The notes under the pieces: model-generated | Seen by the model: the letters and a program-made list of their open reading frames with translations, nothing else | Database searches by the model: none | Told to the model about the DNA's origin: nothing | Translations under genes and position numbers: made by a program | Shown: in pieces, positions 906 through 23,325 of the stretch | Layout of the letters: each line of letters opens with the position of its first letter | Position numbering within the stretch: position 1 is the stretch's first letter | Sequence record: NC_074632.1 | Direction: 5' to 3' (one strand) | Length of the DNA: 23,666 nucleotides

Positions 906-931
906 ACTTCGTTCGGAACTACGTTCCTCAC
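906..931. repeat. Hairpin element copy 1
   Basis: ACTTCGTTC-GGAAC-TAC-GTTCC-TCAC. Confidence 0.9.
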
Positions 932-934
932 AGT

Positions 935-964
935 ATGAATATTCCTAATATTAATCATATGGAT
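935..964. promoter_or_regulatory. 30-bp pseudo-palindromic operator-like motif
   Basis: ATGAATATTCCTAATATTAATCATATGGAT; about 25/30 to consensus ACTCATATWCCTWATATTAATAATATGAAT. Confidence 0.6.
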
Positions 965-984
965 TGTGTAAGGGGGTTTGTTAT

Positions 985-1012
985 TGAAATCAAGATAGAA
1001 AGATTTAAATAG
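985..1012 (+). promoter_or_regulatory. Early promoter (purine-rich BRE + TATA)
   Basis: TGAAATCAAGATAGAAAGATTTAAATAG, just upstream of ORF 1039. Confidence 0.8.
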
Positions 1013-1038
1013 TGGTAATGAGAGATATATAATGAGAG

Positions 1039-1410
1039 GTGGAAAGGTTGGAATTAAACTTCATGTATGATGCAACACATAAGGCACAACAAGTAGAGAA
1101 TAAAGAAGATTTAAATTGGTTTATTGAAGATTTAAAAGATTTTATTTTGAATTATAATTATGTTTATATTGGAAAAATTGGAATTAAGAAGGTTATAAGG
1201 ATTTTCCCAGAGTATTCAGATTTATTTATTGATTTTAATTCAAAGATTGGGTATGTTTTTGTTCATCAAAATGACAGATTTAAACTAGAGTTAGTATTCT
1301 TCACAAGGAAGAACTTTACGTATTTGGGAGATGAGATAAGAGTCGAATTGACAAGTGATGATGAGCTCAAGAAGTTTTTAGGTGTTTTGTTAGGTATATC
1401 ACTTTCTTAA
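1039..1410 (+). CDS. Hypothetical early protein, candidate anti-defence gene
   Basis: 123-aa ORF with its own strong promoter and T-rich terminator. True start may be TTG 1048 (SD GAGGTG) or ATG 1063. No family recognised. Confidence 0.75.
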   Translation: MERLELNFMYDATHKAQQVENKEDLNWFIEDLKDFILNYNYVYIGKIGIKKVIRIFPEYSDLFIDFNSKIGYVFVHQNDRFKLELVFFTRKNFTYLGDEIRVELTSDDELKKFLGVLLGISLS

Positions 1411-1417
1411 GTTATAT

Positions 1418-1440
1418 TTATTTTTTATGCACTATTTTTC
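1418..1440 (+). terminator. T-rich terminator module, repeated at 2041-2064
   Basis: TTTTTATGCACTATTTTT identical at 1422-1439 and 2046-2063, each after a stop codon. Confidence 0.6.
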
Positions 1441-1500
1441 TCAGGTTACATATATTATTTCTATGATTTGAAAATTTTGGTTGCCAACCTGCAATTTGTT

Positions 1501-1528
1501 TGATTTCATGATAGAAAGATTTAAATAG
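1501..1528 (+). promoter_or_regulatory. Early promoter (BRE + TATA)
   Basis: TGATTTCATGATAGAAAGATTTAAATAG upstream of ATG 1562. Confidence 0.8.
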
Positions 1529-1561
1529 CTTGAGTGAGCAGTATATATTAGGGGAAGAAAA

Positions 1562-1792
1562 ATGATAAATCAAATCAAAATTAAAAATTTTGATGAGTGC
1601 ATAAAGTTTTTTGGTATACCAAATCTATCATACAGCCAACTAAGTGGTTCAGAGCAAATATTGTTTGGGGTTTGCAATAAGTTTTTCCGTCTGGGCAAAT
1701 TGGATTTTGACGATATAGACTACGATATTTTGGACATTCAAAACCGAAGTAAATTAGAAAAGTTAATTCTTGAATTATTAGGCAGTTTTTGA
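1562..1792 (+). CDS. Hypothetical early protein (76 aa), candidate anti-defence gene
   Basis: ATG start, purine-rich leader, dedicated promoter. Confidence 0.75.
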   Translation: MINQIKIKNFDECIKFFGIPNLSYSQLSGSEQILFGVCNKFFRLGKLDFDDIDYDILDIQNRSKLEKLILELLGSF

Positions 1793-1810
1793 TTTTTGGT
1801 GATGATAAGC

Positions 1811-1987
<177 letters not shown>

Positions 1988-2112
1988 GTTATTTATTTTT
2001 CTTTTTTTCTGTTTTTCTATTTCTTTCTTTGTTTTTTATTTTATTTTTTTATGCACTATTTTTTTCACATTTGTAATACTAATTGTAAAGTTAGAAATAG
2101 TCTGCTTAATTA

Positions 2113-2139
2113 TGATTTCAAGATAGAAAGATTTATAAG
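2113..2139 (+). promoter_or_regulatory. Early promoter (BRE + TATA)
   Basis: TGATTTCAAGATAGAAAGATTTATAAG upstream of ATG 2173. Confidence 0.8.
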
Positions 2140-2172
2140 TTTGAGATACGAAATATATAATGGGGAGAAAAG

Positions 2173-2478
2173 ATGAGTAAAAATGAATTGGAAATGTTAA
2201 ACGAAATAAATAACAAAATGGATGAGATAAACAAAAAATTAGATATAATTCTTCAGAAATTAGGATTTTCAAACGTGGATTTTGACAAGGTGTTTGAGGA
2301 AGTTAAAAATCCTATGGATATTGCAGTTTTGAAAGACATAAGGGAGAGAATGGGTTTACCAAAGGAAGAATTTTACTCTAAATATTCTTCTTACATTGAG
2401 TCACATTTCCAAATGTATAGGGGCGGAGACGAAGGAATAGTTAAGCATGGAGCGATTTTCGGAATAATAAAAAGGTAG
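2173..2478 (+). CDS. Early protein with N-terminal coiled coil and probable winged-helix-like C-terminal domain
   Basis: Heptad N-terminus (LNEINNKMDEINKKLDII). C-terminal LKDIRERMGLPKEEF...GGDEG...FGIIKR resembles small proteins of Sulfolobales viruses and plasmids (recalled, not searched). Confidence 0.7.
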   Translation: MSKNELEMLNEINNKMDEINKKLDIILQKLGFSNVDFDKVFEEVKNPMDIAVLKDIRERMGLPKEEFYSKYSSYIESHFQMYRGGDEGIVKHGAIFGIIKR

Positions 2479-2499
2479 CATTTTTAATTTCATTTTATA

Positions 2500-2543
2500 T
2501 TTTTTTATCAATAATTTTTCTCAGTTTTCACATAATATTACTA
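2500..2543. terminator. 44-bp T-rich terminator module, copy 1
   Basis: 40/44 identical to 4331-4374; lies between convergent genes. Confidence 0.6.
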
Positions 2544-2551
2544 ACATATTT

Positions 2552-3022
2552 CTATTTTTGATTTTCATCTTTTTTCTTCTTTTTGAACATGTATTCTATC
2601 ACTTTTTTTATTGTTTTATCGTCAAAATTTAATATCTCAAAATGTAAATAGTATGATTTTCTAAATTTTTTCTGTACTTCTTTGTAATCAATTCGTTGAT
2701 TTGTTGCAATTAAGCGGTGATAATGCAATTTATGTTTTTCTCCTTTTTCAGCAATTGAGAATATTTCGGCATTGTAATTTTTATGCAAATATTCTCTTGG
2801 TGGTAGATATATTTCGTCAGTATTTTCTGTGCTTATTTCGATTTTTTTTGTTGTTTCGTTCGGAGCTTCGCTCCTCACTTTAGGTTTTATTGTTTCTGTC
2901 ATAAAATAGAGATATTTATAATTTTCAGCTTTGCTAAGAAATTCTTTTAATTTTTTTGCAGTTGACGTTGAAATATTGTATTTCAGTAAAATCTCTGCGA
3001 TAATGATTTCTTGATTTAGCAT
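2552..3022 (-). CDS. rep: HUH-superfamily replication initiator (rudiviral Rep, SIRV1 ORF119-like)
   Basis: Motif I-like YFMT, HUH motif II LHYHRLI, motif III EYMFK (YxxK); sits near the RHH and SSB genes as in SIRVs. Confidence 0.8.
   Translation of the reverse strand: MLNQEIIIAEILLKYNISTSTAKKLKEFLSKAENYKYLYFMTETIKPKVRSEAPNETTKKIEISTENTDEIYLPPREYLHKNYNAEIFSIAEKGEKHKLHYHRLIATNQRIDYKEVQKKFRKSYYLHFEILNFDDKTIKKVIEYMFKKKKKDENQK
2853..2878. repeat. Hairpin element copy 2 (inside rep)
   Basis: GTTTCGTTC-GGAGC-TTC-GCTCC-TCAC. Confidence 0.9.
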
Positions 3023-3085
3023 GAGAAAAACAAGGAAGTTTACATAAAAAAATGTTATGACTTAATGGTTTTGTTTGTGGTTATG

Positions 3086-3241
3086 TCATTCGTTTTCAGG
3101 CAGTTTGTTTACAAAATCTCTAATTAAATCGTTTATTGTGATATCATTGTCTATGCAATATTTTTTCAATTTTTTGTGTTGCTGTTTTGTTAATCTTATC
3201 GTTATCAATATCTTTTTTTCTTCTTGGTTTTCTGTTTCCAT
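3086..3241 (-). CDS. 51-aa RHH regulator, SvtR-like (below the ORF-track cutoff)
   Basis: Manual translation METENQEEKKILITIRLTKQQHKKLKKYCIDNDITINDLIRDFVNKLPENE; SD GGTGA upstream; KLKKYCIDNDITINDLI resembles the helices of SIRV1 SvtR. Confidence 0.8.
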   Translation of the reverse strand: METENQEEKKILITIRLTKQQHKKLKKYCIDNDITINDLIRDFVNKLPENE

Positions 3242-3365
3242 TTTTTCACCAGTTTATGTATTATCTGTTTACATTTTTAAGAAATTTTGATTTCGATATT
3301 ACGCTATTTCAAGGTTGCAACATATAAAAATGTTGACATCCTATATTAAAAATAGGAGATATAAA

Positions 3366-3659
3366 ATGGAGCATATGTTAAAAACAATTTCAAAACCCGT
3401 TTCAATACGGGTAAGTAAAACTCAATATCAGTTTTTTTTAATGCGTAGACAAGAATTGAAAAGGAAATTACTAAAAAAGGTGATGGATATGGAAAATATA
3501 AAAATAGAAAATAAACCAGACCAAGATAAAGAGATTTACAGAGATACAATATCTTTCAGGTTACCTTATCAATATTACCAAAAGCTTGCTGAAATTGCTG
3601 AAGAAAATCAAGTTAAAGTAAGTGACATTATAAGAAATATTTTATTTGGAGGCGAGTAA
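3366..3659 (+). CDS. Tandem (double) RHH DNA-binding protein
   Basis: Two RHH-like units: PVSIRVSKTQYQFF and TISFRLPYQYYQKLAEIAEENQVKVSDIIRNIL. SD AGGAG favours ATG 3366 over the track start of 3315. Confidence 0.75.
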   Translation: MEHMLKTISKPVSIRVSKTQYQFFLMRRQELKRKLLKKVMDMENIKIENKPDQDKEIYRDTISFRLPYQYYQKLAEIAEENQVKVSDIIRNILFGGE

Positions 3660-3660
3660 G

Positions 3661-4053
3661 ATGGCGAGTTTACAAGAAATATTTAACGAACTGAAAGAGA
3701 AAGTTAAGGAAAGCGGTAAGCCGGCAAACAGAGTACTAAAAATTAAAGGTCTGAAAAGGCTAGTAATTCAATTAAATGCTGTCCCAGATGGAGATTCTGT
3801 AAGATTCAGTATGACAATTCATAGTTCTAGAAATTTCAAAAAACAGTTAGGAATTGTCGCTGACGATGCACAAGATTTCGAAACAATAGCAAATTTTCTA
3901 ACGAAATATAAAGATTATCTAAGCAAATATATCAAATTTAATATACAAGATAGGAGTAATGTCGAAGATATAGAAGATACTGAAGAAACAGAAAAACAAC
4001 AGCCAAAACAAAATAAATCAAAAAAAGAAAGAAATGTTGAAGATGAATTCTAA
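3661..4053 (+). CDS. Single-stranded DNA-binding protein (SIRV2 gp17 / ORF131-like)
   Basis: MASLQEIF...RVLKIKGLKRLVIQLNAVP...SMTIHS...KQLGI and acidic tail ending VEDEF match the recalled rudiviral SSB. Confidence 0.9.
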   Translation: MASLQEIFNELKEKVKESGKPANRVLKIKGLKRLVIQLNAVPDGDSVRFSMTIHSSRNFKKQLGIVADDAQDFETIANFLTKYKDYLSKYIKFNIQDRSNVEDIEDTEETEKQQPKQNKSKKERNVEDEF

Positions 4054-4068
4054 CGCTAGTGATAAAAA

Positions 4069-4323
4069 ATGGTAGTTGATTTGAAGAGAATACAAAAAAT
4101 AATAGAAGATCAGTTTATTTCATACACGGCGCCAAGGATTGATATCATACTGTTTCCTACCGACGAGACTAGCGGTCTTTTTTATGCAGTTTATATCGTT
4201 GAATTTACGGATATTCAATATTTTACATCGCAGAAAATAGCAGAGGGCAAATATATGGTATTTCCAGAACAGAATGTTCTTATTATTAAGATCGGAGATT
4301 CTGCAAAAATTGTAAAGTTATAA
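4069..4323 (+). CDS. Hypothetical protein (84 aa)
   Basis: ATG ORF co-directional with the SSB gene and followed by a terminator. Confidence 0.7.
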   Translation: MVVDLKRIQKIIEDQFISYTAPRIDIILFPTDETSGLFYAVYIVEFTDIQYFTSQKIAEGKYMVFPEQNVLIIKIGDSAKIVKL

Positions 4324-4330
4324 TTTTTTA

Positions 4331-4374
4331 TTTTTTTATCAATAATTTTTCTCACGTTTGCCATAATATTACTA
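4331..4374 (+). terminator. 44-bp T-rich terminator module, copy 2
   Basis: 40/44 identical to 2500-2543. Confidence 0.6.
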
Positions 4375-4388
4375 TTTGCCTATTTAAC

Positions 4389-4414
4389 ACTACGTTCGGA
4401 GCTTCGCTCCTCAC
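4389..4414. repeat. Hairpin element copy 3
   Basis: ACTACGTTC-GGAGC-TTC-GCTCC-TCAC. Confidence 0.9.
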
Positions 4415-4426
4415 TCAATTTTCAAT

Positions 4427-4456
4427 ACAAATATTCCTTATATTATTTATATGTAT
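4427..4456. promoter_or_regulatory. 30-bp operator-like motif upstream of the ATPase gene
   Basis: ACAAATATTCCTTATATTATTTATATGTAT, about 25/30 to consensus. Confidence 0.55.
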
Positions 4457-4517
4457 ATTTTCATTCAATTTTACGTGAAAGAGAAGCTTAAAATATGTTG
4501 ACTCCAACGATTTACGT

Positions 4518-5828
4518 ATGGCATATCCAGAAGAATTCAAAAAAGTTTTTGAAGAAAACTCATTTTTTTTCAATCCTAGAGATGAAAATAGAATTTTGTA
4601 TTATATTTTTAAAAATCCAAATGTTCCTGATGAAAAGAAAACTAACGCATTGAAGGCTTGGAAACTAGGCAACGATAACCAATATTTTGAAATGTACAAA
4701 GCGTTTTCTAATGAAATAAAATTTATATCTAAAATTGTAAAATTTAAAGAAAAAGATGGAGAGATTCTTGCTTATTTTCAAAATGGATTTGTTTCACGCT
4801 TTGATCCAAAAATGTTAGCGGACAACCCAGACGATGCCTACAATTTGCTTCAGTCATATCTTTTAATTAAAATCAAAAAATCTACTGACAGTTGGGAAAT
4901 TTGCGATATCATGCCAGTTGAACCCGCAAAAAATGTAGATATTGCAAAGCAATTGCTCCAATTTGCTGAGGCTGAACATACAACATATTCAGTTTTGCTT
5001 TATGCGTTTGGATATGATGTTGAAAAAATGAATGCTGACGATATTTTGGTTACAGTTCCTAGGTTTTTCCCACTTTTTGTTTCGCCATATTCAAAAAGGC
5101 GTTATAACGTTATTGAAATTTCAAACCCTGGCACCGGCAAGACATCAATTTTTACAATATTACAAGAAGTTTTTAATTTTAGATATTATACGGAACCGCC
5201 AACATATGCAAATTTGGTATACGATGCGAGAAATAATATATATGGTGCAGTGTATCTGTCAAAAGGTCTTATTTTCGATGAAATTCAAACTTGGAAAAAT
5301 AGTACAAATCAGAAAAATATGGAAGCAGTAAATTCTACGTTGTCAACTGGGATGGAAAACTGCATTTGGACAAGGGGAGCAGGGACAGAAAGCAAATCTG
5401 CCGTTCTCCACAGCTGTCTTCCAATTGTCTACGCAGGAAATCCATACACTGCCGTGTTAGACAAATATTCTGCAATGAATGTTGAAGATTATTTGCAACA
5501 ATATGAAATATTTACTCCTGCAATATTGGATAGAATTCATTTAATTCACATTTCGTTGAAAAAAACTTATGATCAGATTGGGAGTAAAAGGGTGCTTTAT
5601 CCTTCAGTTTTAAAGGCTCTTGTAGATTTATTACAAGAAAAACTAAATCAACAAAATCATTTTGTAGATTGTCAAAATTTCACATCAAGAAGGCATGAAC
5701 AATCGGTCGATATACAGTTATTGCTAAGGACGTTAGATTTACAAAATGATGAAATTGAAAAGAATCAAGATGAATTTTGTGCAAAACTTCAAGACTATAT
5801 GAGATTTATAAAACTGATGGGTGATTGA
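4518..5828 (+). CDS. AAA+ ATPase (SIRV2 gp18 / ORF436-like; Lon/MCM-clade ATPase domain)
   Basis: Walker A SNPGTGKTS, Walker B LIFDE, sensor AGNP, arginine-finger-like AILDRI; 436 aa; precedes the Cas4-like nuclease. Confidence 0.9.
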   Translation: MAYPEEFKKVFEENSFFFNPRDENRILYYIFKNPNVPDEKKTNALKAWKLGNDNQYFEMYKAFSNEIKFISKIVKFKEKDGEILAYFQNGFVSRFDPKMLADNPDDAYNLLQSYLLIKIKKSTDSWEICDIMPVEPAKNVDIAKQLLQFAEAEHTTYSVLLYAFGYDVEKMNADDILVTVPRFFPLFVSPYSKRRYNVIEISNPGTGKTSIFTILQEVFNFRYYTEPPTYANLVYDARNNIYGAVYLSKGLIFDEIQTWKNSTNQKNMEAVNSTLSTGMENCIWTRGAGTESKSAVLHSCLPIVYAGNPYTAVLDKYSAMNVEDYLQQYEIFTPAILDRIHLIHISLKKTYDQIGSKRVLYPSVLKALVDLLQEKLNQQNHFVDCQNFTSRRHEQSVDIQLLLRTLDLQNDEIEKNQDEFCAKLQDYMRFIKLMGD

Positions 5829-6457
5829 AAATGGTTTATGAGAATAAAATAAAAGAAAGCTTCAAGAAAATTTATCCAGAAGATACACTTTATCCGTCCG
5901 AAATTGGGCATTGCCTGCGAAAAACAATTTTGGCGAGAAGGATTGTCCATACAAAAAATCTTTCAAATGATTTCATGGATCTTGGCGTAATTATTCATGC
6001 TGACATTGAAAATTACCTAACGCAACAATTAGGTTGCGATGCAGAGAAAGCAATTGAATATCAAATAGAAGGTGTAAAAATATCTGCAAGAATAGATTTA
6101 CTTTGTCATGGCGACCTACTTGAATTGAAAACAGTTTCGCATTTTATTCGTCAACCTTATCAAAATCATATTGTTCAAGTATCTCTTTATTTACATATTT
6201 TATCACAGTTAGGATATAATGTTAATAATGTTTACATTATTTACGTAAATAGACAAAATTATGATGTACAAGAGTTTAAAATTCAAAAAGAACAACTAGA
6301 TGCTGGTTTAAAGCAAGCAATTAAATTTATAGAAGATTATAAGAAATACAAAAATGAGCAAAATATATTTAAAATTCCATTTGCGGATTTAGTTTTTTGC
6401 AAAACTTGCGAATTTAATAATATTTGCTATGGATCGATAACTAATTTTTTAAAATGA
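5825..6457 (+). CDS. Cas4-like (RecB-family, 4Fe-4S) nuclease (SIRV2 gp19-like)
   Basis: N-terminal YPSEIGHCLRK, RIDLL...LLELKT, QVSLY, C-terminal CKTCEFNNIC (1+3 Cys). Start is TTG 5825 or ATG 5831. Confidence 0.9.
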   Translation: MKMVYENKIKESFKKIYPEDTLYPSEIGHCLRKTILARRIVHTKNLSNDFMDLGVIIHADIENYLTQQLGCDAEKAIEYQIEGVKISARIDLLCHGDLLELKTVSHFIRQPYQNHIVQVSLYLHILSQLGYNVNNVYIIYVNRQNYDVQEFKIQKEQLDAGLKQAIKFIEDYKKYKNEQNIFKIPFADLVFCKTCEFNNICYGSITNFLK

Positions 6458-6549
6458 TTCGCCTTATCTGTGTTATTTTTATTGTATGACTCTCTGGTTC
6501 ACTCCGGGGGTTATATACTTTTAAATTATATATTATTAAGAATTATAAT

Positions 6550-6879
6550 ATGGAGAATAAATTCGCTGATTGGAATAAATATAGAAGGCAAGTTAATCAA
6601 GTTATTTTGGAATATTTCAACGAAACTGGTGTGCCGTTAGCGTTGAGATCTTTATATTTTTCATTTGGGCAAAAAATATTGTCAATTGTAAAAAGACAAA
6701 AAGATAAAAATATTATAGATAAATTAGTTGAGGCAAATATTTGCTATTTTTCAAAAGGTTTTGACGCAAATGAAAGAGTATTAAGAGATATTGTAAAAAT
6801 TATATTTTTAATGAAAATTGAGAATAAAAAACCAGATGAAGTTTTGAAAGAGATTTTTACGGATAAAGCTAACCACTAA
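6550..6879 (+). CDS. Probable truncated paralogue of the major capsid protein
   Basis: 16/59 ungapped identities to MCP residues 67-125 of this genome. Confidence 0.7.
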   Translation: MENKFADWNKYRRQVNQVILEYFNETGVPLALRSLYFSFGQKILSIVKRQKDKNIIDKLVEANICYFSKGFDANERVLRDIVKIIFLMKIENKKPDEVLKEIFTDKANH

Positions 6880-6980
6880 TATACCTTATATTAATAATAT
6901 GAATATTGTGTAATTTTGATGTTTTGTTGTAAACATGCATATACATAATATTAGGTATATGCAATTTTCGTATTCAATTT
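6875..6980 (+). promoter_or_regulatory. 106-bp late regulatory module upstream of MCP
   Basis: 30-mer 6875-6904, near-perfect palindrome GCATATACATAATATTAGGTATATGC 6937-6962, CGTATTCAATTT 6969-6980; colinear with 13211-13316. Confidence 0.75.
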
Positions 6981-7017
6981 TTATAAGCTTTTAAAAATAA
7001 TAATAAATTGACGAGAA

Positions 7018-7422
7018 ATGGCGAAAGGTCATACACCAAGGAGTTATTCCCAAAGGTATGCAAAATGGTCAGGGAAATTCACTGCATTTTCAAATCCAAC
7101 GGTAGCATCAACTATACTAACTAACGTTGATGAAGTTGCAAAAGAAAATTTCCAAACTAATGTGCCAAAATTTGCATCAGTTAATGATCAAGTTAGCGCA
7201 GTACTCACTCAGTATGGCGTAACTGGACCTAGCAGAGCGATATATCAAGGCTTCGGGTTAAAAATTGCTAGAGCCTTAAACAGAATTGGATCTGGACCTG
7301 CGTTAACCAATATGATTGCCGGTCTAAAAGCTTATTACATTTCAGCATTCAATGCAAATCCTACAATTTTAGACGCTGTAACTAATATAATTACTGGAAG
7401 TCCTAACGGGTACGTTAGCTAA
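7018..7422 (+). CDS. Rudivirus major capsid protein (SIRV P134 / gp26)
   Basis: MAKGHTPRSYSQRYAKW...RAIYQGFGLKIARALNRIGSGPAL...SAFNANP...GYVS is nearly identical to the recalled SIRV2 MCP. Confidence 0.97.
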   Translation: MAKGHTPRSYSQRYAKWSGKFTAFSNPTVASTILTNVDEVAKENFQTNVPKFASVNDQVSAVLTQYGVTGPSRAIYQGFGLKIARALNRIGSGPALTNMIAGLKAYYISAFNANPTILDAVTNIITGSPNGYVS

Positions 7423-7526
7423 CCTTAAAAGCTAATATATTGTTTTTTTATTTTTCTATTTTGCGTTTTAGTCCAATCTATATCTGAAAATTTTGTTTTA
7501 AAAATGTAAACATGAATAACTAAACC

Positions 7527-7751
7527 ATGATTGAAGAATATTTAAGACAAAAGGGCTTTGAGCCCCATTATATTTCAATTTTGAAAGAATTTCTGATTGA
7601 AATAAAAGAAGCATTAGATGAGAACGTTAGTAATTACGATTTAGACGAAATTATAAATTCTATCATCGAATATTTTGCAATAACATATAAATTACAAAAA
7701 ACAGATCTTTACCAACTTGTGAACGATGCGATACAAGACGGTGTTGTATGA
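7527..7751 (+). CDS. Acidic 74-aa protein, possible second truncated MCP-fold paralogue
   Basis: 15/68 ungapped identities to MCP 59-126 with conserved hydrophobic pattern. Confidence 0.6.
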   Translation: MIEEYLRQKGFEPHYISILKEFLIEIKEALDENVSNYDLDEIINSIIEYFAITYKLQKTDLYQLVNDAIQDGVV

Positions 7752-8771
7752 ATGGCAAAAACGCTTATCTTAACTATGGGCTATGCGTCTGTTAAGAATG
7801 TCGCTGAAGACATCGCAACAGTCGTGGGCAATGCAACTGTTGATGTTGAGCCTGCGTTGTATTTACAAAATATAAATAAATTTGATAAACTTATTGTTTT
7901 TGTTCCGTTTGTCCCCTCACTTTTAAACAATTATCTGTTGGTTTATAATAATTTTCAAGGCGAGAAATATTTCTACACAACCGCAGACGGCGTACCGTTG
8001 TTGAATGGCGTAAATGAATATATTGCAAGAAATATAAAATATATACCAAATTCTCAGTTTTCTGCAGAAAATCTAAAATCTGCCAATCTTGATGTGGATA
8101 TTCCAGTTTTTCATGGCGTAAACTTCGACATAGTGAAGAAGGCAGAAGAATTAGTTCCAAAAATGAGAGAAAAACTTGACCATGATTTTCCAGATAGTGT
8201 GAAAATCGGTATTGTTTCAGGTATGACGAGACGCAAAAACATCGATTTGTTTGTCGAAACAACCAGATTTCTGAACGAAAAAATGTCAGATATTGCGAAA
8301 AATATACATTTCTTTGTAATTTCGCATAAAGATTTTCAGAAATTGGACGTACCACAAAACGTTCATTTTGTTGCGCAATTTGGATATCAAAGTAGAGAAA
8401 AAGTATTTGCGTTTTACGGTGCGATGGACTATGTATTTGTTCCATCGGGATGTGAAGGATTTGGATTGCCAGTTCTAGAGGCGATGGCGATGGGCACTCC
8501 TGTAATTCACATGGCTATACCGCCATTCACTGAATTTACATCGTGGCAGTGGAATTTTCTGTTTAAAGATGAGGATGTGGAAAGATATTACGATAAGGAC
8601 CATGGTCAAACATGGAAAATCCATCGATTCACACCGGAAACTGGCGCACTAGCGATTTCGACGGCAGTGATGTCGGTTGATAGGGAGGAAAGAAGCAGGA
8701 GACTGAGAGATTTAGCTAAAAAATATGATATTAGGTTTTTATACAAGAGATTTTTAGAGAGTTTCGAATAG
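7752..8771 (+). CDS. GT-B (GT4-like) glycosyltransferase
   Basis: PSGCEGFGLPVLEAMAMGTPVI (Ex7E motif). Confidence 0.92.
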   Translation: MAKTLILTMGYASVKNVAEDIATVVGNATVDVEPALYLQNINKFDKLIVFVPFVPSLLNNYLLVYNNFQGEKYFYTTADGVPLLNGVNEYIARNIKYIPNSQFSAENLKSANLDVDIPVFHGVNFDIVKKAEELVPKMREKLDHDFPDSVKIGIVSGMTRRKNIDLFVETTRFLNEKMSDIAKNIHFFVISHKDFQKLDVPQNVHFVAQFGYQSREKVFAFYGAMDYVFVPSGCEGFGLPVLEAMAMGTPVIHMAIPPFTEFTSWQWNFLFKDEDVERYYDKDHGQTWKIHRFTPETGALAISTAVMSVDREERSRRLRDLAKKYDIRFLYKRFLESFE

Positions 8772-9698
8772 GGCATAGACCGTGCATGGACCTGTCGCCC
8801 ATGCGTAAATGTTAGATGGATTGTTAACTGAAAATTCCAAACTATCATTTGGCAAAATTGGAAAATTATTGTAAAGTTTGTTTCCAATATATACAATATA
8901 ATTAGAAAGATTTTGTAATATGATTTTTACAGTTTCTAGCGATGGACCTGAATAAATTGGTGACGGTGTTGTTGAAATTTGCAGTTGAAGACCTTGTATT
9001 GCAGGTGGGCTCATGTACATTGTCAATTTATTGATTGCGCTTGACAGTGAGTTCATGGATAAATAAATATACGCAAGTGCGTAAAGTAGGGCGTCAGTAA
9101 TCGTATAGATTGCCCCAGATAGCCCTGCCGATATCTGATTTGTTAATCTTGCAGTGACTAAATACACATTATTGTAAATATTTTGCAAAATTTCTGGCAC
9201 ATACAAAGTTGGCGATATTGCGGTTTTTATCTGATTGTCAACGCCAATTATAACCTGGTAAAGATTCTGGTAAACATTGTTTATTTCGCTTTGTAATGCA
9301 TTTTGTGTTTGTGTAACTGTTCCTGCGGTCAATTTGGCAATTGCGTTATAGACGTCAGATGGCATTTGAACAACTGCATTATACAATTGTGTTTGGCTGT
9401 TTACAATTGCTTGAATTTGTTGCGAAGCAGTTGCAATAAATCCTGCAATATAGATAGGATCTTGCTCTGTTATAACGGGCTGACCTGATACGTAAACTTC
9501 ATTGTAAAAATCTCCAACTTGTGCAGTAATATTGTTTGGAACGTAAAGATTACCGTTTTGAAATAATTGCCTGTCAATAAGTGTCCCAGCAAAATATATC
9601 TGGTTCAGTTTCAAAATTGCGGTATTCCACATCGCCGATGTCAATCTCTGAAACGGCTGTACGAATAAATCTGCAAAATTGGTATATTGAATACTCAT
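8754..9698 (-). CDS. Conserved rudiviral protein (SIRV ORF309-like), probably structural
   Basis: 314 aa, Q/N-rich helical middle, beta-rich C-terminus, N-terminal LTSAMWNTAILKL motif shared with fibre-like proteins. Confidence 0.65.
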   Translation of the reverse strand: MSIQYTNFADLFVQPFQRLTSAMWNTAILKLNQIYFAGTLIDRQLFQNGNLYVPNNITAQVGDFYNEVYVSGQPVITEQDPIYIAGFIATASQQIQAIVNSQTQLYNAVVQMPSDVYNAIAKLTAGTVTQTQNALQSEINNVYQNLYQVIIGVDNQIKTAISPTLYVPEILQNIYNNVYLVTARLTNQISAGLSGAIYTITDALLYALAYIYLSMNSLSSAINKLTMYMSPPAIQGLQLQISTTPSPIYSGPSLETVKIILQNLSNYIVYIGNKLYNNFPILPNDSLEFSVNNPSNIYAWATGPCTVYALFETL

Positions 9699-9736
9699 AA
9701 TTAAAAATGTTGTGTAATAGACTTATAAATGTCATC

Positions 9737-9786
9737 GTGATGCGCAAAGCGCAGAACGTAGTGAGGTGCGTAGCACCGAACGTAGT
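9737..9786. repeat. Hairpin element copies 4 and 5 in tandem (reverse orientation, 24-bp period)
   Basis: Reverse complement reads ACTACGTTC-GGTGC-TAC-GCACC-TC|ACTACGTTC-TGCGC-TTT-GCGCA-TCAC. Confidence 0.9.
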
Positions 9787-9873
9787 GCTAGTTAGGTCTT
9801 TTAAATTTCAGTGGAAATATATTTATTATGGTGAGACATTACGAGTTTTGATAATATTTTTGGACCGGTCAGA

Positions 9874-10191
9874 TTGATAATCGATAAATTGAAAGAATTG
9901 GAAATGAGGGGTGAGGCTTACGGTTTTTCCCAATATTTGTCACAGGCAATAATTTTATTCAGGACGACAGACAATGGCGCAATATACCAAATATTCATTC
10001 CTAATTTTAGTTATTATTTTGAATTTCTTGTTGAAAAAGATCCAAAAACAAAAGCGCCTATGGTTTCAGATTATAGAATTATTTATCCTGCGCCTGTGAA
10101 GATTTCAGATAGTCAAATTATGAAAGAATTAATACAAGATTATCTTCAATTTCAAGCGATGCAGATGCAGGGTAGCGGTCAAAATGAGTGA
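9874..10191 (+). CDS. Hypothetical protein
   Basis: 105-aa ORF (TTG start, or the internal ATG of MRGEAY); stop overlaps the next start. Confidence 0.7.
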   Translation: MIIDKLKELEMRGEAYGFSQYLSQAIILFRTTDNGAIYQIFIPNFSYYFEFLVEKDPKTKAPMVSDYRIIYPAPVKISDSQIMKELIQDYLQFQAMQMQGSGQNE

Positions 10192-10432
10192 AGCCACTCT
10201 TGTTCTTACAACACTTTCTACAACTGTGACTGTGTTATTGTCAATTATTACACTTTACTATAAGATAAAAACAATGTTTCGCAATGCAGTAAAGGATATT
10301 GTAAAACAAGAATTAGACAATTTGGTCAAAGAGATTTCAAAAATAAAGCAAAAACAAGACAAACAAGAAAACGATATTGAATATCTAAAACAAGAAATTG
10401 AAGAAATAAAAAAGAAAGTTGAAAAATTATAG
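10184..10432 (+). CDS. Small membrane protein: N-terminal TM helix plus coiled coil
   Basis: Hydrophobic residues 5-26 followed by K/E/Q heptads. Confidence 0.75.
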   Translation: MSEATLVLTTLSTTVTVLLSIITLYYKIKTMFRNAVKDIVKQELDNLVKEISKIKQKQDKQENDIEYLKQEIEEIKKKVEKL

Positions 10433-10639
10433 TTGTCTGTTGCTTTTTTCTCTTAATTCTTTCAATATTTTTATTACTTCTTGTGCTTTTTTGTATAAAT
10501 CTGACTTTCTAATATTTTCATCATCTACGGTTGCAAGTTCCATAGCCAAGTTGTCAAGCGCAACAAACAATTTTGCTGAAAATTCTTTATCTTGTTTTAT
10601 CTTTGGTTTTATTTCTTCTATTGTTTCTTTTTCACTCAT
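10427..10639 (-). CDS. Hypothetical helical protein (70 aa)
   Basis: ATG start coupled to the GNAT stop, SD AGGTGA, K/E-rich composition. Confidence 0.7.
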   Translation of the reverse strand: MSEKETIEEIKPKIKQDKEFSAKLFVALDNLAMELATVDDENIRKSDLYKKAQEVIKILKELREKSNRQL

Positions 10640-11153
10640 CTTTTTTCACCTCGTTTTTCGTTTTTTTGTCTTTTTCGTTTACTTCGTTCGGCACTACGTG
10701 CCTCACATTTAAATATTTTACAAAAACTGGCGTATTTGTTCTAGGCGTGTCTCCGACATATTCAAATCCTGAATTTTTATATAATGCATTTGAATGATTT
10801 GGAAAACCTAAAGTCCACAGCACTTCAATTTCATATGATTTCAGTAAATCAGATAATTTTTCAAGAAATTCTACAAGGTAATCGCCTGGGGCAGTTTTCG
10901 TAACCCTTCTAATAAAATACGATCTGTCAATTGGAATTTTGAATTTTTCTGCAACAAATCTGAATGGAATTGAATCGTTGATCCACGCAATTGCAACGAT
11001 GTAATTATCGCATTGATATGTAAAATATTTCTGGATTTTTGACGCTCCACCGCCTTGCGTTATGCCTTGAGCATGATATTTTGCAATTAGCAATCGTGAT
11101 AATTCAATATCTTTCTTATCCTGAAGTTCAACTATTTTGCATTCTTCCGCCAT
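10632..11153 (-). CDS. GNAT-family acetyltransferase
   Basis: FIRRVTK...YLVEFLEKL...EVLWTLG...NHSNALYKNSGFEYVG matches GNAT motifs A and B. Confidence 0.7.
   Translation of the reverse strand: MAEECKIVELQDKKDIELSRLLIAKYHAQGITQGGGASKIQKYFTYQCDNYIVAIAWINDSIPFRFVAEKFKIPIDRSYFIRRVTKTAPGDYLVEFLEKLSDLLKSYEIEVLWTLGFPNHSNALYKNSGFEYVGDTPRTNTPVFVKYLNVRHVVPNEVNEKDKKTKNEVKKDE
10681..10706. repeat. Hairpin element copy 6 (inside the GNAT 3-prime end)
   Basis: ACTTCGTTC-GGCAC-TAC-GTGCC-TCAC. Confidence 0.9.
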
Positions 11154-11194
11154 TTTCAGTATAATTATTCATAATATAACTTATAAGAATATAC

Positions 11195-11392
11195 CTAATG
11201 GTGAAAGCAGTGTGCCCAAAGATCTACGGAAACGCCAGTTGAAACAATAAGGACAATTATTGCAAATATTTTCTCTCCAGTGCTAACATTAGAAAAAATC
11301 AAAATTATAGATAAAACAATAAGAAGTAGCAAACCATACAAATCATGCATTTTTCCATGAGAAAAATAATAAAACATATCGCAGTTAGACAT
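11195..11392 (-). CDS. Small two-TM membrane protein
   Basis: LYGLLLLIVLSIILIFS and KIFAIIVLIVSTGVSV hydrophobic segments; ATG 11392 overlaps the hjc stop (alternative ATG 11350). Confidence 0.6.
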   Translation of the reverse strand: MSNCDMFYYFSHGKMHDLYGLLLLIVLSIILIFSNVSTGEKIFAIIVLIVSTGVSVDLWAHCFHH

Positions 11393-13156: not shown

Positions 13157-13210
13157 TCTTCATCTATGTATTATTTCTCTTATTGCCACTTTTATTGCTC
13201 AATTTTCAAC

Positions 13211-13316
13211 ACTCATATTCCTTATATTAATAATATGAATGTTGCCGATACTTTTACGTGGTTTAGAAACATTATTATACCTAATATTAGGTATAATGAT
13301 ATTGCGTATTGAATTT
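13211..13316 (+). promoter_or_regulatory. 106-bp regulatory module between divergent genes
   Basis: 30-mer 13211-13240, perfect 24-bp palindrome ATTATACCTAATATTAGGTATAAT 13274-13297, CGTATTGAATTT 13305-13316. Confidence 0.75.
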
Positions 13317-15421: not shown

Positions 15422-15427
15422 TGCAAT

Positions 15428-15457
15428 ATTCATATTATATATATAAGGTATATGAGT
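15428..15457. promoter_or_regulatory. 30-bp operator-like motif (reverse orientation) upstream of the largest structural gene
   Basis: ATTCATATTATATATATAAGGTATATGAGT, 27/30 to 20085-20114. Confidence 0.7.
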
Positions 15458-15517
15458 GTACTATTTTGTGCAATTGAATAAATAAGAATAATGTTTACAA
15501 ATAATGTATGATATAAT

Positions 15518-18866: not shown

Positions 18867-20078
18867 ATGGCAACACCTCTTAATCACGTATCGTCAAACA
18901 ACGTCATTTCGTCATCTGCATGGAACCAGGCAATCTCCGATTTGGAATATATTTATAGTGAATATCAAACAATTCTAAATACTATACAACAACTGCAAAA
19001 TATCAACAGCCAAATTACGGCATCAAATTATCAGACTGAGGCAACTGACGCATGTAACGCCATTCAAAATCTTTTCAATTATTTACAAAGCCCAACATTA
19101 TTATCATCTTTCCCTGATTATATTACAAATATCCCGCCTGCCGTTACTGGGGGCGTATTATTTGCGTCTATGATGAATTCTTTGACATATGCGGTAGAAA
19201 AATTGTATAATTCAATAATGCCAAAGCCCGCACCGCAAATTTCAACAGTTGCTGGCGGAGATATAGTAACTGCAAGACATTGGAATAAAATCGTGGATAC
19301 AATAAATACATTATTAAATTTATTTTCACCAACAATTTTTGCAAACAGATATACAACAATAAATGTAAATTTTCCTTTTATATTTCTATATTTGAATGAA
19401 TCTGGTGTATCGGTCAACACTGATGGTCCAATAAACACAATGTTCATCACTGGCGTAACACAACAAACATATCTAGAATATTATTTTTACGGTCCAAATC
19501 CAATTACAAATTTATTTTTATGCGCAGAAACAAGTGAGGGTGCGTCATACAACAATATGTTTATCCAAAACATATATATATATCAACAAAATACATATTA
19601 CTATTTTCTTGATAATTCTGTTACACAAAATGTATATGCATATAATGAGGATATATATTTGGTTGAAGAAAATAATGCATATGTACAAAATGCATATATA
19701 TACGGCGCTTATGCAGAAATTGAAACATATGACAATGCAATTGCAGACAATATATATACATACGGATACAAATCAGCCGTTTATGTAGAGAATTCCTCTA
19801 CGGTTAATAATATATATGTATATGCCGATTACGGATACCTATACGTCTACGATTACGCAACTGTGGAAAACATATATGTTTTCGGAAATGAAGGAATAGT
19901 TGAAGCATCTTCTCCAGCGATAGTTCAAAATTTATATTTATGTGGCGGAGATAATTCAATATTTCCATATAACGTAATAAATCTTTATTTATGCAATTCT
20001 AATAATTATATATCTGGAGGATCTCCAAATATAATAACTGATTCTTCTGTCTGCAACCAAATATGCGGTTCAAATTGA
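18867..20078 (+). CDS. Putative fibre/adhesin with C-terminal beta-solenoid
   Basis: N-terminal WN motifs; seven exact 20-aa-period xxNxYxY repeats (19563-19982). Confidence 0.65.
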   Translation: MATPLNHVSSNNVISSSAWNQAISDLEYIYSEYQTILNTIQQLQNINSQITASNYQTEATDACNAIQNLFNYLQSPTLLSSFPDYITNIPPAVTGGVLFASMMNSLTYAVEKLYNSIMPKPAPQISTVAGGDIVTARHWNKIVDTINTLLNLFSPTIFANRYTTINVNFPFIFLYLNESGVSVNTDGPINTMFITGVTQQTYLEYYFYGPNPITNLFLCAETSEGASYNNMFIQNIYIYQQNTYYYFLDNSVTQNVYAYNEDIYLVEENNAYVQNAYIYGAYAEIETYDNAIADNIYTYGYKSAVYVENSSTVNNIYVYADYGYLYVYDYATVENIYVFGNEGIVEASSPAIVQNLYLCGGDNSIFPYNVINLYLCNSNNYISGGSPNIITDSSVCNQICGSN

Positions 20079-20084
20079 TTAAGT

Positions 20085-20180
20085 ATTCATATTATTAATA
20101 TTAGGTATATGAGTACTGGATATTTTTCGCTCAGAATCAAAAAATTTGTCTGCAACATTCCTATATATTATATAAGGAAT
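20085..20180. promoter_or_regulatory. Paired operator-like motifs upstream of the methyltransferase-GT operon
   Basis: ATTCATATTATTAATATTAGGTATATGAGT 20085-20114 and near-palindrome ATTCCTATATATTATATAAGGAAT 20157-20180. Confidence 0.65.
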
Positions 20181-20241
20181 ATTAGCATTCAGAATTGTTA
20201 ATGAATTTGCTTTTTAAAATGTTTACACAAAGAATATCATT

Positions 20242-21310: not shown

Positions 21311-22372
21311 ATGCTCATTTACTACGTTTACCCAATGCACCATGACGTTAGTTTCAAATTTGTTGCACTAGAACATATCAAAATGCTAAAAAGCGAATAT
21401 ACTGTCTACGATATTCCAGAATTGAATTTTTATCAGTTTACACCATATGGGAAACCGCTAACATTTATCCATCCATTCTTTTACGGCATGGTAAATTGGA
21501 ATGATGTACAATGGTCATTTTTCAAAATGTACAGATCAAAAGTATCAAAAATAATTGGAATAGAAGTTGCAGACAGTGATAAAATTGCAGAAAAATACAT
21601 CGATATCGCAAACTCATGGGCGGATGCTCTTATTGTAAATTCCAAATGGTCTTACAACGCATATATAAATTCAGGCTTGAAAATTCCAATTTTTGTAGTC
21701 CCCCACAATTACGATCCAAAGCTTGAAGTCTCAGATGATCAACTTAAAGTTTCACCAGAAATCAAAAAAATTGAAGAAATAAAAAACGAAAAGAAAATCA
21801 AAATCATACTATTTTTCGCATGGCATTCAGCGTATAGAAAAGGTGACGATTTATTTCAAAAAATAGCAAGACAAATACAAAAAGAACGGAATGACATTTA
21901 CTTTATTGTAAAATCTCCAATGCCACGCCAAGATTTGAATGACCTAAAGCTTTTTAATATTACTGGCGTCATACCGTTTGACGATATCGTCAAGATGTAT
22001 CGTATCGCAGACGTATTGCTTTTGCCTTCACGTGGCGGATCATTTGAATTGAACGGTCTTGAGGCTTTGGTTAGCGGGACACCAGTTATTGCGCCTGATG
22101 AAGGACCTTGGACTGAATATTTCCCACCGTCACTGAAGTATTTACTAGCAAAAACTGTAAATCATCCAATCGTTTTGCCTGGTAATCCAATTCATATCGG
22201 ACAGGGAGTAGAAATTTCAATAGATGATGCAGTAGAGAAAACACTAAAAATTCTAGATAATATTGAAGAAGAAAAAGCAAAAGTAAAAAATGAAATTGAT
22301 TTCTTCCACAAAAATTACAGTTTTGATGCAGTAAAAAGGAAATTACTAGACGTAACATCTACCTTCGTCTAG
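21311..22372 (+). CDS. GT-B (GT4-like) glycosyltransferase
   Basis: YRKGDD and LLPSRGGSFELNGLEALVSGTPVI. Confidence 0.9.
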   Translation: MLIYYVYPMHHDVSFKFVALEHIKMLKSEYTVYDIPELNFYQFTPYGKPLTFIHPFFYGMVNWNDVQWSFFKMYRSKVSKIIGIEVADSDKIAEKYIDIANSWADALIVNSKWSYNAYINSGLKIPIFVVPHNYDPKLEVSDDQLKVSPEIKKIEEIKNEKKIKIILFFAWHSAYRKGDDLFQKIARQIQKERNDIYFIVKSPMPRQDLNDLKLFNITGVIPFDDIVKMYRIADVLLLPSRGGSFELNGLEALVSGTPVIAPDEGPWTEYFPPSLKYLLAKTVNHPIVLPGNPIHIGQGVEISIDDAVEKTLKILDNIEEEKAKVKNEIDFFHKNYSFDAVKRKLLDVTSTFV

Positions 22373-23191: not shown

Positions 23192-23325
23192 GTGAAAATC
23201 TAAAAATGACTACATTTTTATAACTTGATGAAAATAGATGTATGATTATGTACTGTTAGTTCAAATTTTAAAATCATAGAAATAATATGGCAAACTTGAA
23301 AAAAATAGCAGACAAAAAAAGAAAA

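Follow-up and report, generated by a model that had tools for sequence, protein, structure and literature searches.

A 24-nt hairpin unit that comes and goes in frame in rudiviral genes, possibly a REP-like insertion module

How does the same short hairpin come to lie at six scattered places in the genome of an archaeal virus, with a stem that differs from place to place and nevertheless stays complementary? The question is raised by a stretch of 23,666 nucleotides (the window) from sequence record NC_074632.1, which belongs to the rudivirus ARV3 and has a G+C content of 32%. Neither hairpins nor palindromes come up in the paper describing ARV3, which states that terminal repeats were not found in this virus (bioRxiv 10.1101/2020.01.16.907410); a description of the 24-nt hairpin unit could not be found in the searchable papers either. 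An original prediction, based on the letters of the window, had proposed that the six elements are signals acting in single-stranded DNA (ssDNA) or copies of a tiny mobile element. A comparison of four Hoswirudiviruses (ARV3, SSRV1, MRV1 and ARV2) and of hot-spring rudivirus contigs reveals that the units are present or absent at precise positions between close relatives. About an even chance is given here to the reading that the unit is a miniature palindromic insertion module resembling the repetitive extragenic palindromic (REP) elements of bacteria, which is copied as DNA from one locus to another and from one co-infecting rudivirus to another, and needs the ssDNA hairpin of its purine-rich strand in cis. 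The copies and the two features most closely connected with them are listed below; the strand of a copy is the one that reads GTGA, and bit scores refer to a covariance model built from 10 unit copies and scanned over about 0.9 Mb of Sulfolobales virus sequence.

Copy 1, 906 to 931, minus strand: GTGA GGAAC GTA GTTCC GAAC GAAGT; 41.3 bits.
Copy 2, 2853 to 2878, minus strand: GTGA GGAGC GAA GCTCC GAAC GAAAC; inside gp06 (HUH Rep), with an exact 24-nt gap in SSRV1, MRV1 and ARV2.
Copy 3, 4389 to 4414, minus strand: GTGA GGAGC GAA GCTCC GAAC GTAGT; intergenic between gp10 and gp11; 43.2 bits.
Copy 4, 9737 to 9762, plus strand: GTGA TGCGC AAA GCGCA GAAC GTAGT; first of a head-to-tail pair with a period of 24 nt.
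Copy 5, 9761 to 9786, plus strand: GTGA GGTGC GTA GCACC GAAC GTAGT; second of the pair; 41.3 bits.
Copy 6, 10681 to 10706, minus strand: GTGA GGCAC GTA GTGCC GAAC GAAGT; near the 3' end of gp21, with a 24-nt gap in SSRV1, MRV1 and ARV2; 42.3 bits.
ARV3-specific intergenic insertion, 9701 to 9799, plus strand: net length about 96 nt (8 x 12), between the divergent genes gp17 and gp18, bearing copies 4 and 5.
gp06, 2552 to 3022, minus strand: rudiviral HUH Rep, annotated as hypothetical (PF21578, PDB 2X3G); host of copy 2.

The coordinates, stems and loops of all six copies were reproduced as predicted, including the C-GNA-G loop on the GTGA strand in five copies and C-AAA-G in one, and a second C-GWA-G that lies 12 nt downstream. 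The tandem copies 4 and 5 share a 2-nt GT, and the true unit is 24 nt long; on the purine-rich strand it consists of GTGA, five stem nucleotides, GNA or AAA, the five complementary nucleotides, GAAC and GWA, and is followed by GT. The 3' flank of copy 2 is degenerate (GAACGAAAC). The unit also has an inner period of 12 nt, since N6-CGWAGT occurs in it twice (GAGGCA-CGWAGT and GCCGAA-CGWAGT). Searching the window with the flanks alone (GTGA-N13-GAACGWAGT, up to two mismatches) yielded seven matches, where 0.63 were expected, and seven were reached in none of 100 shuffles; the seventh match, at 21321-21346, lacks a stem and was dismissed as chance. The pattern TGA-N5-N3-revcomp(N5)-GAAC returned the six copies; 300 dinucleotide shuffles gave 0.017 on average and never more than 1. 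The same unit is found in the independently sequenced MRV1 and in hot-spring metagenome contigs from JGI/ENA, and the elements are therefore not artefacts. That they are chance or compositional products, double-stranded DNA (dsDNA) operators for a dimeric regulator, or errors of sequencing or assembly is a negligible prospect: only the small size of the motif speaks for it, while the copy number far exceeds the chance expectation, reading frames are kept in independent isolates and metagenomes, and a stem whose sequence varies with its complementarity kept is the opposite of operator behaviour.

The variation of the stem was quantified in 16 copies from ARV3, MRV1 and hot-spring rudivirus contigs. 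Watson-Crick pairs occupy 79 of the 80 inner-stem cells; 26 cells carry two-sided changes, four of the five inner pairs vary on both sides, and neither one-sided changes nor G-U pairs occur. The observed covariation score was reached in none of 500 shuffles, and registers slid along the unit pair at 12-40%. The flanks are conserved, and the same unit occurs in different genes and viruses. Some stems recur across loci, namely GGCAC in ARV3 copy 6, in the MRV1 unit MRV1_a and in contig L274, and GGAGC in copies 2 and 3. With 26 two-sided changes, the stem behaves as predicted for an element in which selection or a mechanism acts on structure rather than on a dsDNA binding sequence; this view is also borne out by the missing G-U pairs and by compensatory changes at orthologous sites. 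The lack of wobble pairs leans towards DNA over RNA as the folded form, albeit modestly because the copies are related. Another predicted property, the GC-richness of the stems, applies to the ARV3 copies but is not universal, as shown by the stem TGAAC/GTTCA of a hot-spring contig and by CAATT/AATTG in a possible relative of the unit.

Outside the five inner pairs, G1-C21 and U2-A20 are able to pair and G3.A19 and A4.G18 form a tandem sheared-G.A arrangement, so that the RNA-folded helix extends to nine positions. In contig L385, the 3' flank is TCAC and all nine positions are Watson-Crick pairs (GTGA/TCAC), which supports a continuous helix. Nearest-neighbour energies, calculated with RNA parameters and without the extra stability of the C-GNA-G triloop, amount to -9.5 kcal/mol at 37 °C for the purine-rich strand and -7.0 kcal/mol for its complement, a difference of 2.5 kcal/mol in favour of the strand on which the hairpin had been predicted. 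C-GNA-G loops with tandem G.A pairs form a class of unusually stable DNA mini-hairpins. Five of the six ARV3 copies share the C-GNA-G triloop closed by a sheared G.A pair with the d(GCGAAGC) mini-hairpins, and GCGAAGC itself is present in two, as had been noted before. Judged from its letters, the junction between units, GAAC-GWA-GTGA, may also close as a mini-hairpin; the 24 nt would then be made up of two times nine paired bases and two triloops.

The main new result of the analysis is the inserting character of the units, which come and go at precise positions between closely related rudiviruses, either as single units or in head-to-tail arrays. In gp06, copy 2 adds exactly 24 nt in frame, encodes VRSEAPNE and falls in a low-confidence linker of the structural model (a single-sequence prediction with a pLDDT of 68). 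Copy 6 is likewise an exact 24-nt in-frame insert (RHVVPNEV) near the 3' end of the gene for the acetyltransferase gp21. In MRV1, two tandem units in gp19 (L003 9371-9420) form an in-frame insert of 48 nt and 16 residues, which is missing from the orthologues of ARV3, ARV2, SSRV1 and ARV1. Copies 4 and 5 lie within the insertion of about 96 nt that is seen only in ARV3, and a small Cys-rich open reading frame (ORF) of contig L411 carries a 24-nt insert that is identical to the L274 unit in 22 of 24 bases; this insert, which contains the A.C mismatch, is a decaying copy at yet another locus. All these inserts are multiples of 12 bp: 24 nt in gp06, gp21, L411 and at a second site of a methyltransferase gene, 48 nt in MRV1 gp19, 36 and 60 nt at the first methyltransferase site and about 96 nt in the intergenic case. 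Genic inserts come in multiples of 24 nt, along with further 12-nt multiples, and hence leave the reading frame intact. About half of all copies are intragenic (in ARV3, two of the six clearly so). Of the original options, these exact differences between close relatives favour the tiny mobile element.

A series of such differences within one gene is provided by a methyltransferase homologous to ARV3 gp29, which exists in three forms in hot-spring (SIRV-like) rudiviruses. The form of 158 amino acids has no insert. The form of 170 amino acids has an additional 36 nt encoding AKLLEVKAERSE, including a solo junction motif GAACGAAGTGA or GAACGTAGTGAGG (GAACGWAGTGA), and the form of 178-180 amino acids has the same 36 nt plus one 24-nt hairpin unit exactly at the solo motif. 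The stems at this first site are as follows.

L274: GGCAC/GTGCC.
L425: ATCGC/GCGAT.
L426 and L384: ACCGC/GCGGT, with different loops.
L385: TGAAC/GTTCA.

Hence, four different stems are found at one site, all of them complementary and embedded in almost the same 36 nt. ATCGC and ACCGC differ in a single pair that is changed on both sides, i.e., by two transitions. The gene also has a second site, which is occupied by a variant of the unit, GTGT CGAGC AAA GCTCG CCAC in L427 and GTGT CAAGC AAA GCTTG CCAC in L428; these stems are again one compensatory pair apart. Alleles with an insert do not group together when a tree is built from the remainder of the gene, and the starred branches need at least two changes. 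The unit has therefore either been moved between backgrounds by recombination, or it was gained or lost repeatedly.

The purine-rich strand serves as the sense strand at each of the six independent coding sites. Three of these inserts are read as GTG AGG ... (V R x x x P N) and three as A GT GAG ... (of the type E A R S A E R S); these two sense frames encode hydrophilic peptides, and TGA occurs in the third. The sense-strand bias is one argument for the idea that the unit acts as RNA, i.e., that a GUGA-stem-GAAC hairpin with tandem sheared G.A pairs serves in mRNAs or 5' leaders as a binding or stabilizing element, for example in protection from 5'-3' decay, as a site for L7Ae similar to a kink-turn (K-turn), or as a decoy against RNA-guided defence of the host. 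However, selection on the tolerability of hydrophilic peptides may explain the bias as well. The extended helix folds at the -9.5 kcal/mol given above, and copies 4 and 5 follow 6 nt downstream of a TATA-like box (TTATAAAT), which lies within the ARV3-only insertion, and point toward gp18; copies 1 and 3, however, are antisense to the flanking plus-strand genes. A K-turn can be drawn from copy 5 plus the end of copy 4 (ACGU/ACGU C-stem, AGU bulge, G.A and A.G), but this drawing fits the tandem copy only. A decoy would be in keeping with the finding that ARV3 and MRV1 have no recognizable anti-CRISPR genes (bioRxiv 10.1101/2020.01.16.907410), and more than 50 metagenomic contigs among the matches listed contain a conserved putative small RNA that opens with the same GUGAGGCGCGAAGCGCCGAACG hairpin. 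Wobble pairs, which RNA helices usually accommodate, are absent from the 80 stem cells, and no Rfam family, those for CRISPR direct repeats, C/D box and K-turn RNAs included, was matched at the elements (window and 37 look-alike loci). Taken together, an RNA function appears distinctly unlikely.

Several specific RNA elements were considered and rejected. A K-turn or box C/D RNA would agree with the tandem G.A pairs and the NC-stem, which are present; the C-stem and the bulge can be drawn for copy 5 only. A mini-intron of the bulge-helix-bulge type would need bulges on opposite strands and a stem of 4 bp; the unit has its bulges placed otherwise and a stem of 5 bp. Recoding at the UGA of GTGA, as with a selenocysteine insertion sequence, is excluded by the position of this UGA, which is out of frame in every coding copy. 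The units abut without spacers, which speaks against a mini-CRISPR array, and no Rfam CRISPR direct-repeat match was obtained at E<=1.

The covariance model identified six copies in ARV3, two in MRV1 and one each in L274, L384, L385, L425, L426 and L411; the variant units of L427 and L428 were not scored by the model and were recognized from their sequence. No canonical copy scored in SSRV1, ARV2, ARV1, SIRV1/2-like contigs, SBRV1, lipothrixvirus segments, ATV2, ASV1 or ABV. A BLAST search of the tandem pair against 50,697 records of phages and archaeal viruses retrieved only ARV3 itself, by a method that is too insensitive. At the site orthologous to copy 3, MRV1 and ARV2 contain an AT-rich hairpin, CTTCT CAATT TAC AATTG TCAT, whose counterpart in SSRV1 has CAATT TGC AGTTG with one G.T pair. 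It is located after a terminator-like repeat at the following positions.

L003 (MRV1), 1940-1965: AT-rich hairpin.
L004, about 4183-4208: AT-rich hairpin.
L002, about 2296-2320: AT-rich hairpin.

This hairpin may be a diverged or ancestral relative of the unit.

This distribution bears on the proposal that the units are cis-acting ssDNA signals of strand-displacement replication, which serve lagging-strand priming in the manner of plasmid single-strand origins or the origin of phage G4, or secondary nicking by Rep and re-initiation, and which are kept by selection. The premise that rudiviruses make ssDNA, which had been stated beforehand, agrees with the literature on SIRV2: this virus replicates mainly by strand displacement from termini nicked by Rep and produces abundant long ssDNA (PMC5062984). 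ARV3 also encodes an HUH Rep. The stable C-GNA-G loops with tandem G.A pairs on the purine-rich strand, the lack of G-U pairs, the compensatory changes at orthologous sites and the possible conserved hairpin upstream of the ATPase gene in all four Hoswirudiviruses would suit such a signal too. However, viruses with the same replication genes, i.e., SSRV1, ARV2, ARV1 and SIRV-like viruses, have no canonical copy that scores, and the units of ARV3, MRV1 and the hot-spring viruses occupy non-orthologous positions. Half of the copies are intragenic, the L411 copy is decaying, and the orientation of the copies follows neither a simple left-half/right-half rule nor the GC skew. Furthermore, the flanks are unlike the motif of the inverted terminal repeats (ITRs), and nearest-neighbour energies are about 0 kcal/mol at 80 °C in a model without a special triloop bonus. 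A strand-dependent function would be shared with the single-strand origins of plasmids and phages, but the distribution of the unit argues against an essential role. An essential replication signal is therefore unlikely, the internal nick, priming or packaging signal of the original prediction is not supported in the form of a fixed signal, and ssDNA signals kept by selection are on the whole a rather improbable explanation.

For the REP-like insertion module, the following route can be envisaged. The active form is probably the purine-rich strand as ssDNA, which would be exposed by strand-displacement replication. The GU/AC pairs, two sheared G.A pairs, the 5-bp stem and the GNA triloop would fold into one hairpin of nine pairs, and GAAC-GWA-GTGA could close the other end to give a potential dumbbell of 18 paired bases and two triloops. 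New copies would arise beside GT, often ATGT or AAGT, or at existing junction motifs, either by a cut-and-join enzyme of the HUH type (the viral Rep or an IS200/IS605-type transposase of the host) or by template switching and gene conversion provoked by the hairpin. Inserts would survive where the hydrophilic peptide (VRxxxPN or EARSAERS) falls in a tolerant loop. We infer one of three agents of mobilization: the viral Rep, a host Y1 transposase, or template switching and conversion by the polymerase.

A candidate for the first of these is gp06, which matches PF21578 at E=1e-6 and PDB 2X3G (SIRV1 ORF119) at E=1.8e-6 and 4.7e-8; 2X3G is also the top Foldseek match. gp06 is thus the rudiviral HUH Rep and the sole HUH nuclease found in the ARV3 genome, which makes it a candidate for acting on ssDNA hairpins. 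Compared with the SIRV1 protein of 119 amino acids, it has an N-terminal extension of about 65 residues. A RAYT-like (REP-associated tyrosine transposase) identity of gp06 was rejected because Foldseek returned Rep 2X3G and weak matches to Rep domains, but not TnpA, with a low-confidence single-sequence model. The virus ATV2, which co-occurs in Italy, has two IS605-family OrfB elements (L429 16328-20175), showing that IS200/IS605 machinery circulates in the same virus community.

A number of observations weigh against the module. Copy numbers are low, and no gain or loss event was directly observed. Only GT is constant at the insertion sites, often preceded by A-W, and no target-site duplication or strong target consensus beyond this ambiguous GT was found there. 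A domain of an IS200/IS605-type Y1 transposase or RAYT was not detected in the 20 of 33 ARV3 proteins that were scanned. The flanks are also unlike the ITR motif TAGGAATTT, which we take to be the region nicked by Rep. The palindrome conserved in the ITRs of ARV3 and ARV1 contains GGTAGGAATTT, the SIRV2 ITR has TAGGAATTT repeats, and the flanks GAACGWAGTGA have only TAG in common with these motifs; this speaks against mimicry of the terminal Rep nick site, and one 9-mer match (GCACCGAAC, about 196-204) is no more than expected by chance. The main point that a selfish module does not fully explain is the occurrence of compensatory single-pair changes at orthologous sites (ATCGC/ACCGC and CGAGC/CAAGC), according to which something keeps the hairpin after insertion. 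A dead selfish insert needs no upkeep of its hairpin, which suggests a maintaining process unless mismatch correction or conversion within the hairpin provides it. Finally, the possible AT-rich hairpin at the copy-3 site of MRV1, ARV2 and SSRV1 hints at a conserved local function.

Among known systems, the unit most invites comparison with the REPs of bacteria, which are stem-loops of 20-40 bp with a GTAG tag, few unpaired bases and a 3-bp tail (PMC3733652). REP sub-families differ by complementary stem changes, and REPs occur in tandem arrays and in strain-specific abundance; occasional in-frame intragenic copies are often located in replication or repair genes, and the elements are cleaved as ssDNA by RAYT, an HUH Y1 transposase (PMC3733652). 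The rudiviral family of 16 copies resembles them in its short GC-rich stem-loop with variable, complementary stems, in the arrangement of a possible tag (GWAG), TGA, stem-loop and GAA with a 3-bp tail, and in its head-to-tail arrays, patchy distribution and in-frame copies, one of which is in a replication gene. The tag that follows GAAC is GTAG in copies 3, 4 and 5, GAAG in copies 1 and 6 and GAAA in copy 2. In contrast to REPs, the tag is located 3' of the hairpin on the purine-rich strand and, in arrays, also 5' of the next unit. Genomes contain two to six copies instead of tens to thousands, about half of them intragenic; the only dimer is head to tail, without inverted doublets; the unit is strictly 24 nt long and is carried by an archaeal virus; no RAYT was found in the ARV3 proteins scanned; and the G-T pairing often shown by REPs is absent. 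As copy number, RAYT, tag position and inverted doublets do not agree, the unit is called REP-like and not REP.

Insertion with strand specificity, recognition of an ssDNA hairpin and joining 3' of a short target without duplication would be shared with the peel-and-paste transposition of IS200/IS605 elements, which are abundant in Sulfolobales and present in co-occurring viruses, as illustrated by ATV2. These elements, however, need two distinct subterminal hairpins and a Y1 transposase and have a length of at least about 100 bp, and no conserved tetranucleotide target is found for the unit. Rickettsia palindromic elements (RPEs) and the GC clusters of yeast mitochondria are palindromic and relatively GC-rich selfish elements of AT-rich genomes, which insert in frame. 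The rudiviral unit has in common with them that palindromic in-frame inserts are tolerated as extra peptide segments, but those elements, at about 30-150 bp, are far longer and belong to other lineages. RPEs are also discussed in the REP paper (PMC3733652). Miniature inverted-repeat transposable elements differ from the unit in their terminal inverted repeats, which stem from an insertion sequence, in their length of 50-500 bp and in target duplication, none of which is discernible here beyond the ambiguous GT.

Indels of 12 bp, generally within ORFs, are a recognized trait of rudiviruses and lipothrixviruses; they differ between close variants and keep the reading frame (PMC4390879, summarizing Peng 2004 and Vestergaard 2008). 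The units conform to this trait in that they are 12-bp multiples, differ between close variants and keep the frame where they lie in ORFs, and plain 12-nt indels occur among ARV3, SSRV1, MRV1 and ARV2 as well. They differ by their defined sequence, hairpin and junction motif; the 12-bp indels described previously have, to our knowledge, no sequence in common. The unit is best read as a sequence-defined case of these rudiviral indels. Six plain 12-nt (4-aa) indels without a hairpin or shared motif were seen in gp07, gp09, gp21, gp28 and gp32 in comparison with SSRV1, MRV1 and ARV2, for example DKKT in gp21 and QEEK in gp07, and the ARV2 orthologue of gp30 has an insert of 108 nt (9 x 12). In the census of indel lengths among Hoswirudiviruses, the excess of 12-nt multiples is modest (11 of 31).

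It could be argued that the units are functionless by-products of such a 12-bp-quantized process, with neither mobility nor selection: palindromy would result from fold-back or snap-back synthesis at stalled 3' ends and would be kept by mismatch correction in transient hairpins. All inserts being 12-nt multiples (24, 36, 48, 60 and about 96), the inner 12-nt period of the unit and the six unrelated plain indels among the same four viruses are consistent with this idea, as is the packing of 12 bp per capsid-protein dimer in virions (PMC5517147). Furthermore, the perfect 9-bp palindrome of L385 is what fold-back copying is expected to give. Nevertheless, the idea is highly doubtful: de novo fold-back would not yield the same 11-nt flanks and an exact 5+3+5 nt in viruses from Italy and unrelated hot-spring metagenomes, identical or near-identical units occur at different loci, the other 12-nt indels lack a motif in common with the unit, and the excess of 4-aa multiples is as modest as stated above. 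At the other extreme, the unit might be a mobile DNA smaller than any seen before: a cassette that the rudiviral HUH Rep or a Y1 transposase of the host cuts and rejoins on ssDNA at GAACGWAG/TGA. It could pass through a closed 24-nt dumbbell (nine pairs, two GNA triloops) that would be a miniature of a hairpin-ended viral genome, act as the agent of the 12-bp-quantized indels in Ligamenvirales and possibly be favoured because an in-frame insertion breaks CRISPR protospacers. This version must be regarded as a long shot.

Sequences resembling the core of the unit are not confined to viruses. In pattern scans of genomes and metagenomes, GTGA-hairpin-GAACG-NAG cores were found in many unrelated bacterial and archaeal repeat families among the matches listed, and fully complementary inner triplets were present in 42 of 128 look-alikes among these, compared with about 2 expected. 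The matches of the IMG/VR pattern scan were mostly dismissed as chance. One IMG/VR contig (L048, 46% GC) has four look-alikes at 107-197, 1867-1909 and 5598-5625. Like the ATTGCC-GNA-GGCAAT hairpins that accompany them, they fall within a Hep_Hag-like protein repeat (IAxGNKVRAxGxN), with translation in the V-R frame; their stems co-vary (GGGCC/GGCCC versus GAGCC/GGCTC), and they are probably a coincidence. A family of more than 50 metagenome contigs among the matches listed (L237-L356), which are AT-rich with 30-40% GC, and also L137, L201 and L209 (metagenome-assembled genomes (MAGs) of Nanoarchaeota), contain a conserved block of about 120 nt, AAAAATAGCCACAATAA-N-GTGAGGCGCGAAGCGCCGAACGCGCCCGGCAT...AAAAGGGCGnTTAAnGGTGATTAAACGAA, once per contig and without an Rfam match. 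The block resembles a small structured RNA that has not been described, or an element end, and opens with a GUGA-hairpin-GAAC module. In L162, a gammaproteobacterial MAG, a tRNA-like 5' half (GCGCCCGTAGCTCAGCTGG) directly precedes GTGAGTGGCGAAGCCACGAACGAAGT twice, at 6779-6803 and 6868-6892; here, a hairpin unit may have been inserted into a tRNA-like sequence or fused to one.

Within ARV3, copy 1 is located between two promoter-like repeats spaced 96 nt apart (839-887 and 935-983) and within the annotated but doubtful gp01 (839-1012), which starts within the first of these repeats and is probably not a real gene. Copy 3 sits between a T-rich terminator-like repeat (4323-4374) and a promoter-like repeat (4414-4459). 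The insertion with copies 4 and 5 creates an ORF at 9707-9877, which reads both units in the V-R frame. In the region 9699-9903, ARV3 has ACG where the orthologues of gp18 start with ATG; the annotated start lies farther downstream, and the stop codon of this ORF overlaps with a TTG at 9874 (TTGA).

The T-rich repeat of 52 nt (TTTTTTTATC.ATAATTTTTCTCA...ATAATATTACTA) occurs on the plus strand at 1412-1463, 2036-2087, 2492-2543 and 4323-4374, directly downstream of gp02, gp04, gp05 and gp10, and inverted near 23263-23345 on the opposite strand near gp33. It is also present in MRV1, SSRV1 and ARV2 and resembles a common terminator or 3'-end module. Many genes are preceded by a palindromic AT-rich repeat, ATATTCCTTATATTAATAATATGAAT, which also forms inverted pairs with a complementarity of up to 91% and is probably a shared promoter or operator. 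Its positions are as follows.

839-887, AT-rich palindromic repeat.
935-983, AT-rich palindromic repeat.
4414-4475, AT-rich palindromic repeat.
6862-6974, AT-rich palindromic repeat.
11148-11200, AT-rich palindromic repeat.
13194-13310, AT-rich palindromic repeat.
15423-15474, AT-rich palindromic repeat.
20070-20197, AT-rich palindromic repeat.

At the left end, an imperfect palindrome of about 50 nt, GGTAGGAATTTAACGACGTTGAG...CGTTAATTTTTCCTACC, is found at 109-207. The ARV3 record begins within this terminal region, so that the true genome end is missing. The palindrome is conserved in ARV3 and in both terminal repeats of ARV1 (L005, about 290-380 plus a right-end copy), contains TAGGAATTT as do the terminal repeats of SIRV2, and is likely a Rep or resolvase site. 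It is followed at 314-479 by left-terminal repeats of about 24-44 nt (ATTTGAGATTTACAATTATTTGTA), whose starts are 48 and 72 nt apart, which once more are multiples of 12 or 24.

What, then, does the unit mean for these viruses? Indels in multiples of 12 bp have been known in rudiviruses and lipothrixviruses since 2004, and their origin is unexplained. The unit is a case of such an indel that is defined by sequence and structure and has a junction motif, which makes the indel process testable. As far as could be found, REP-like palindromic elements had not been reported from archaeal viruses, and the unit would be the first. Conserved viral genes, namely those for the Rep, the acetyltransferase, the methyltransferase and a large conserved hypothetical protein (gp24 family), tolerate peptides encoded by the hairpin. 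For the annotation of ARV3, gp01 and the ORF at 9707-9877 may be by-products, and gp06 is identified as the Rep.

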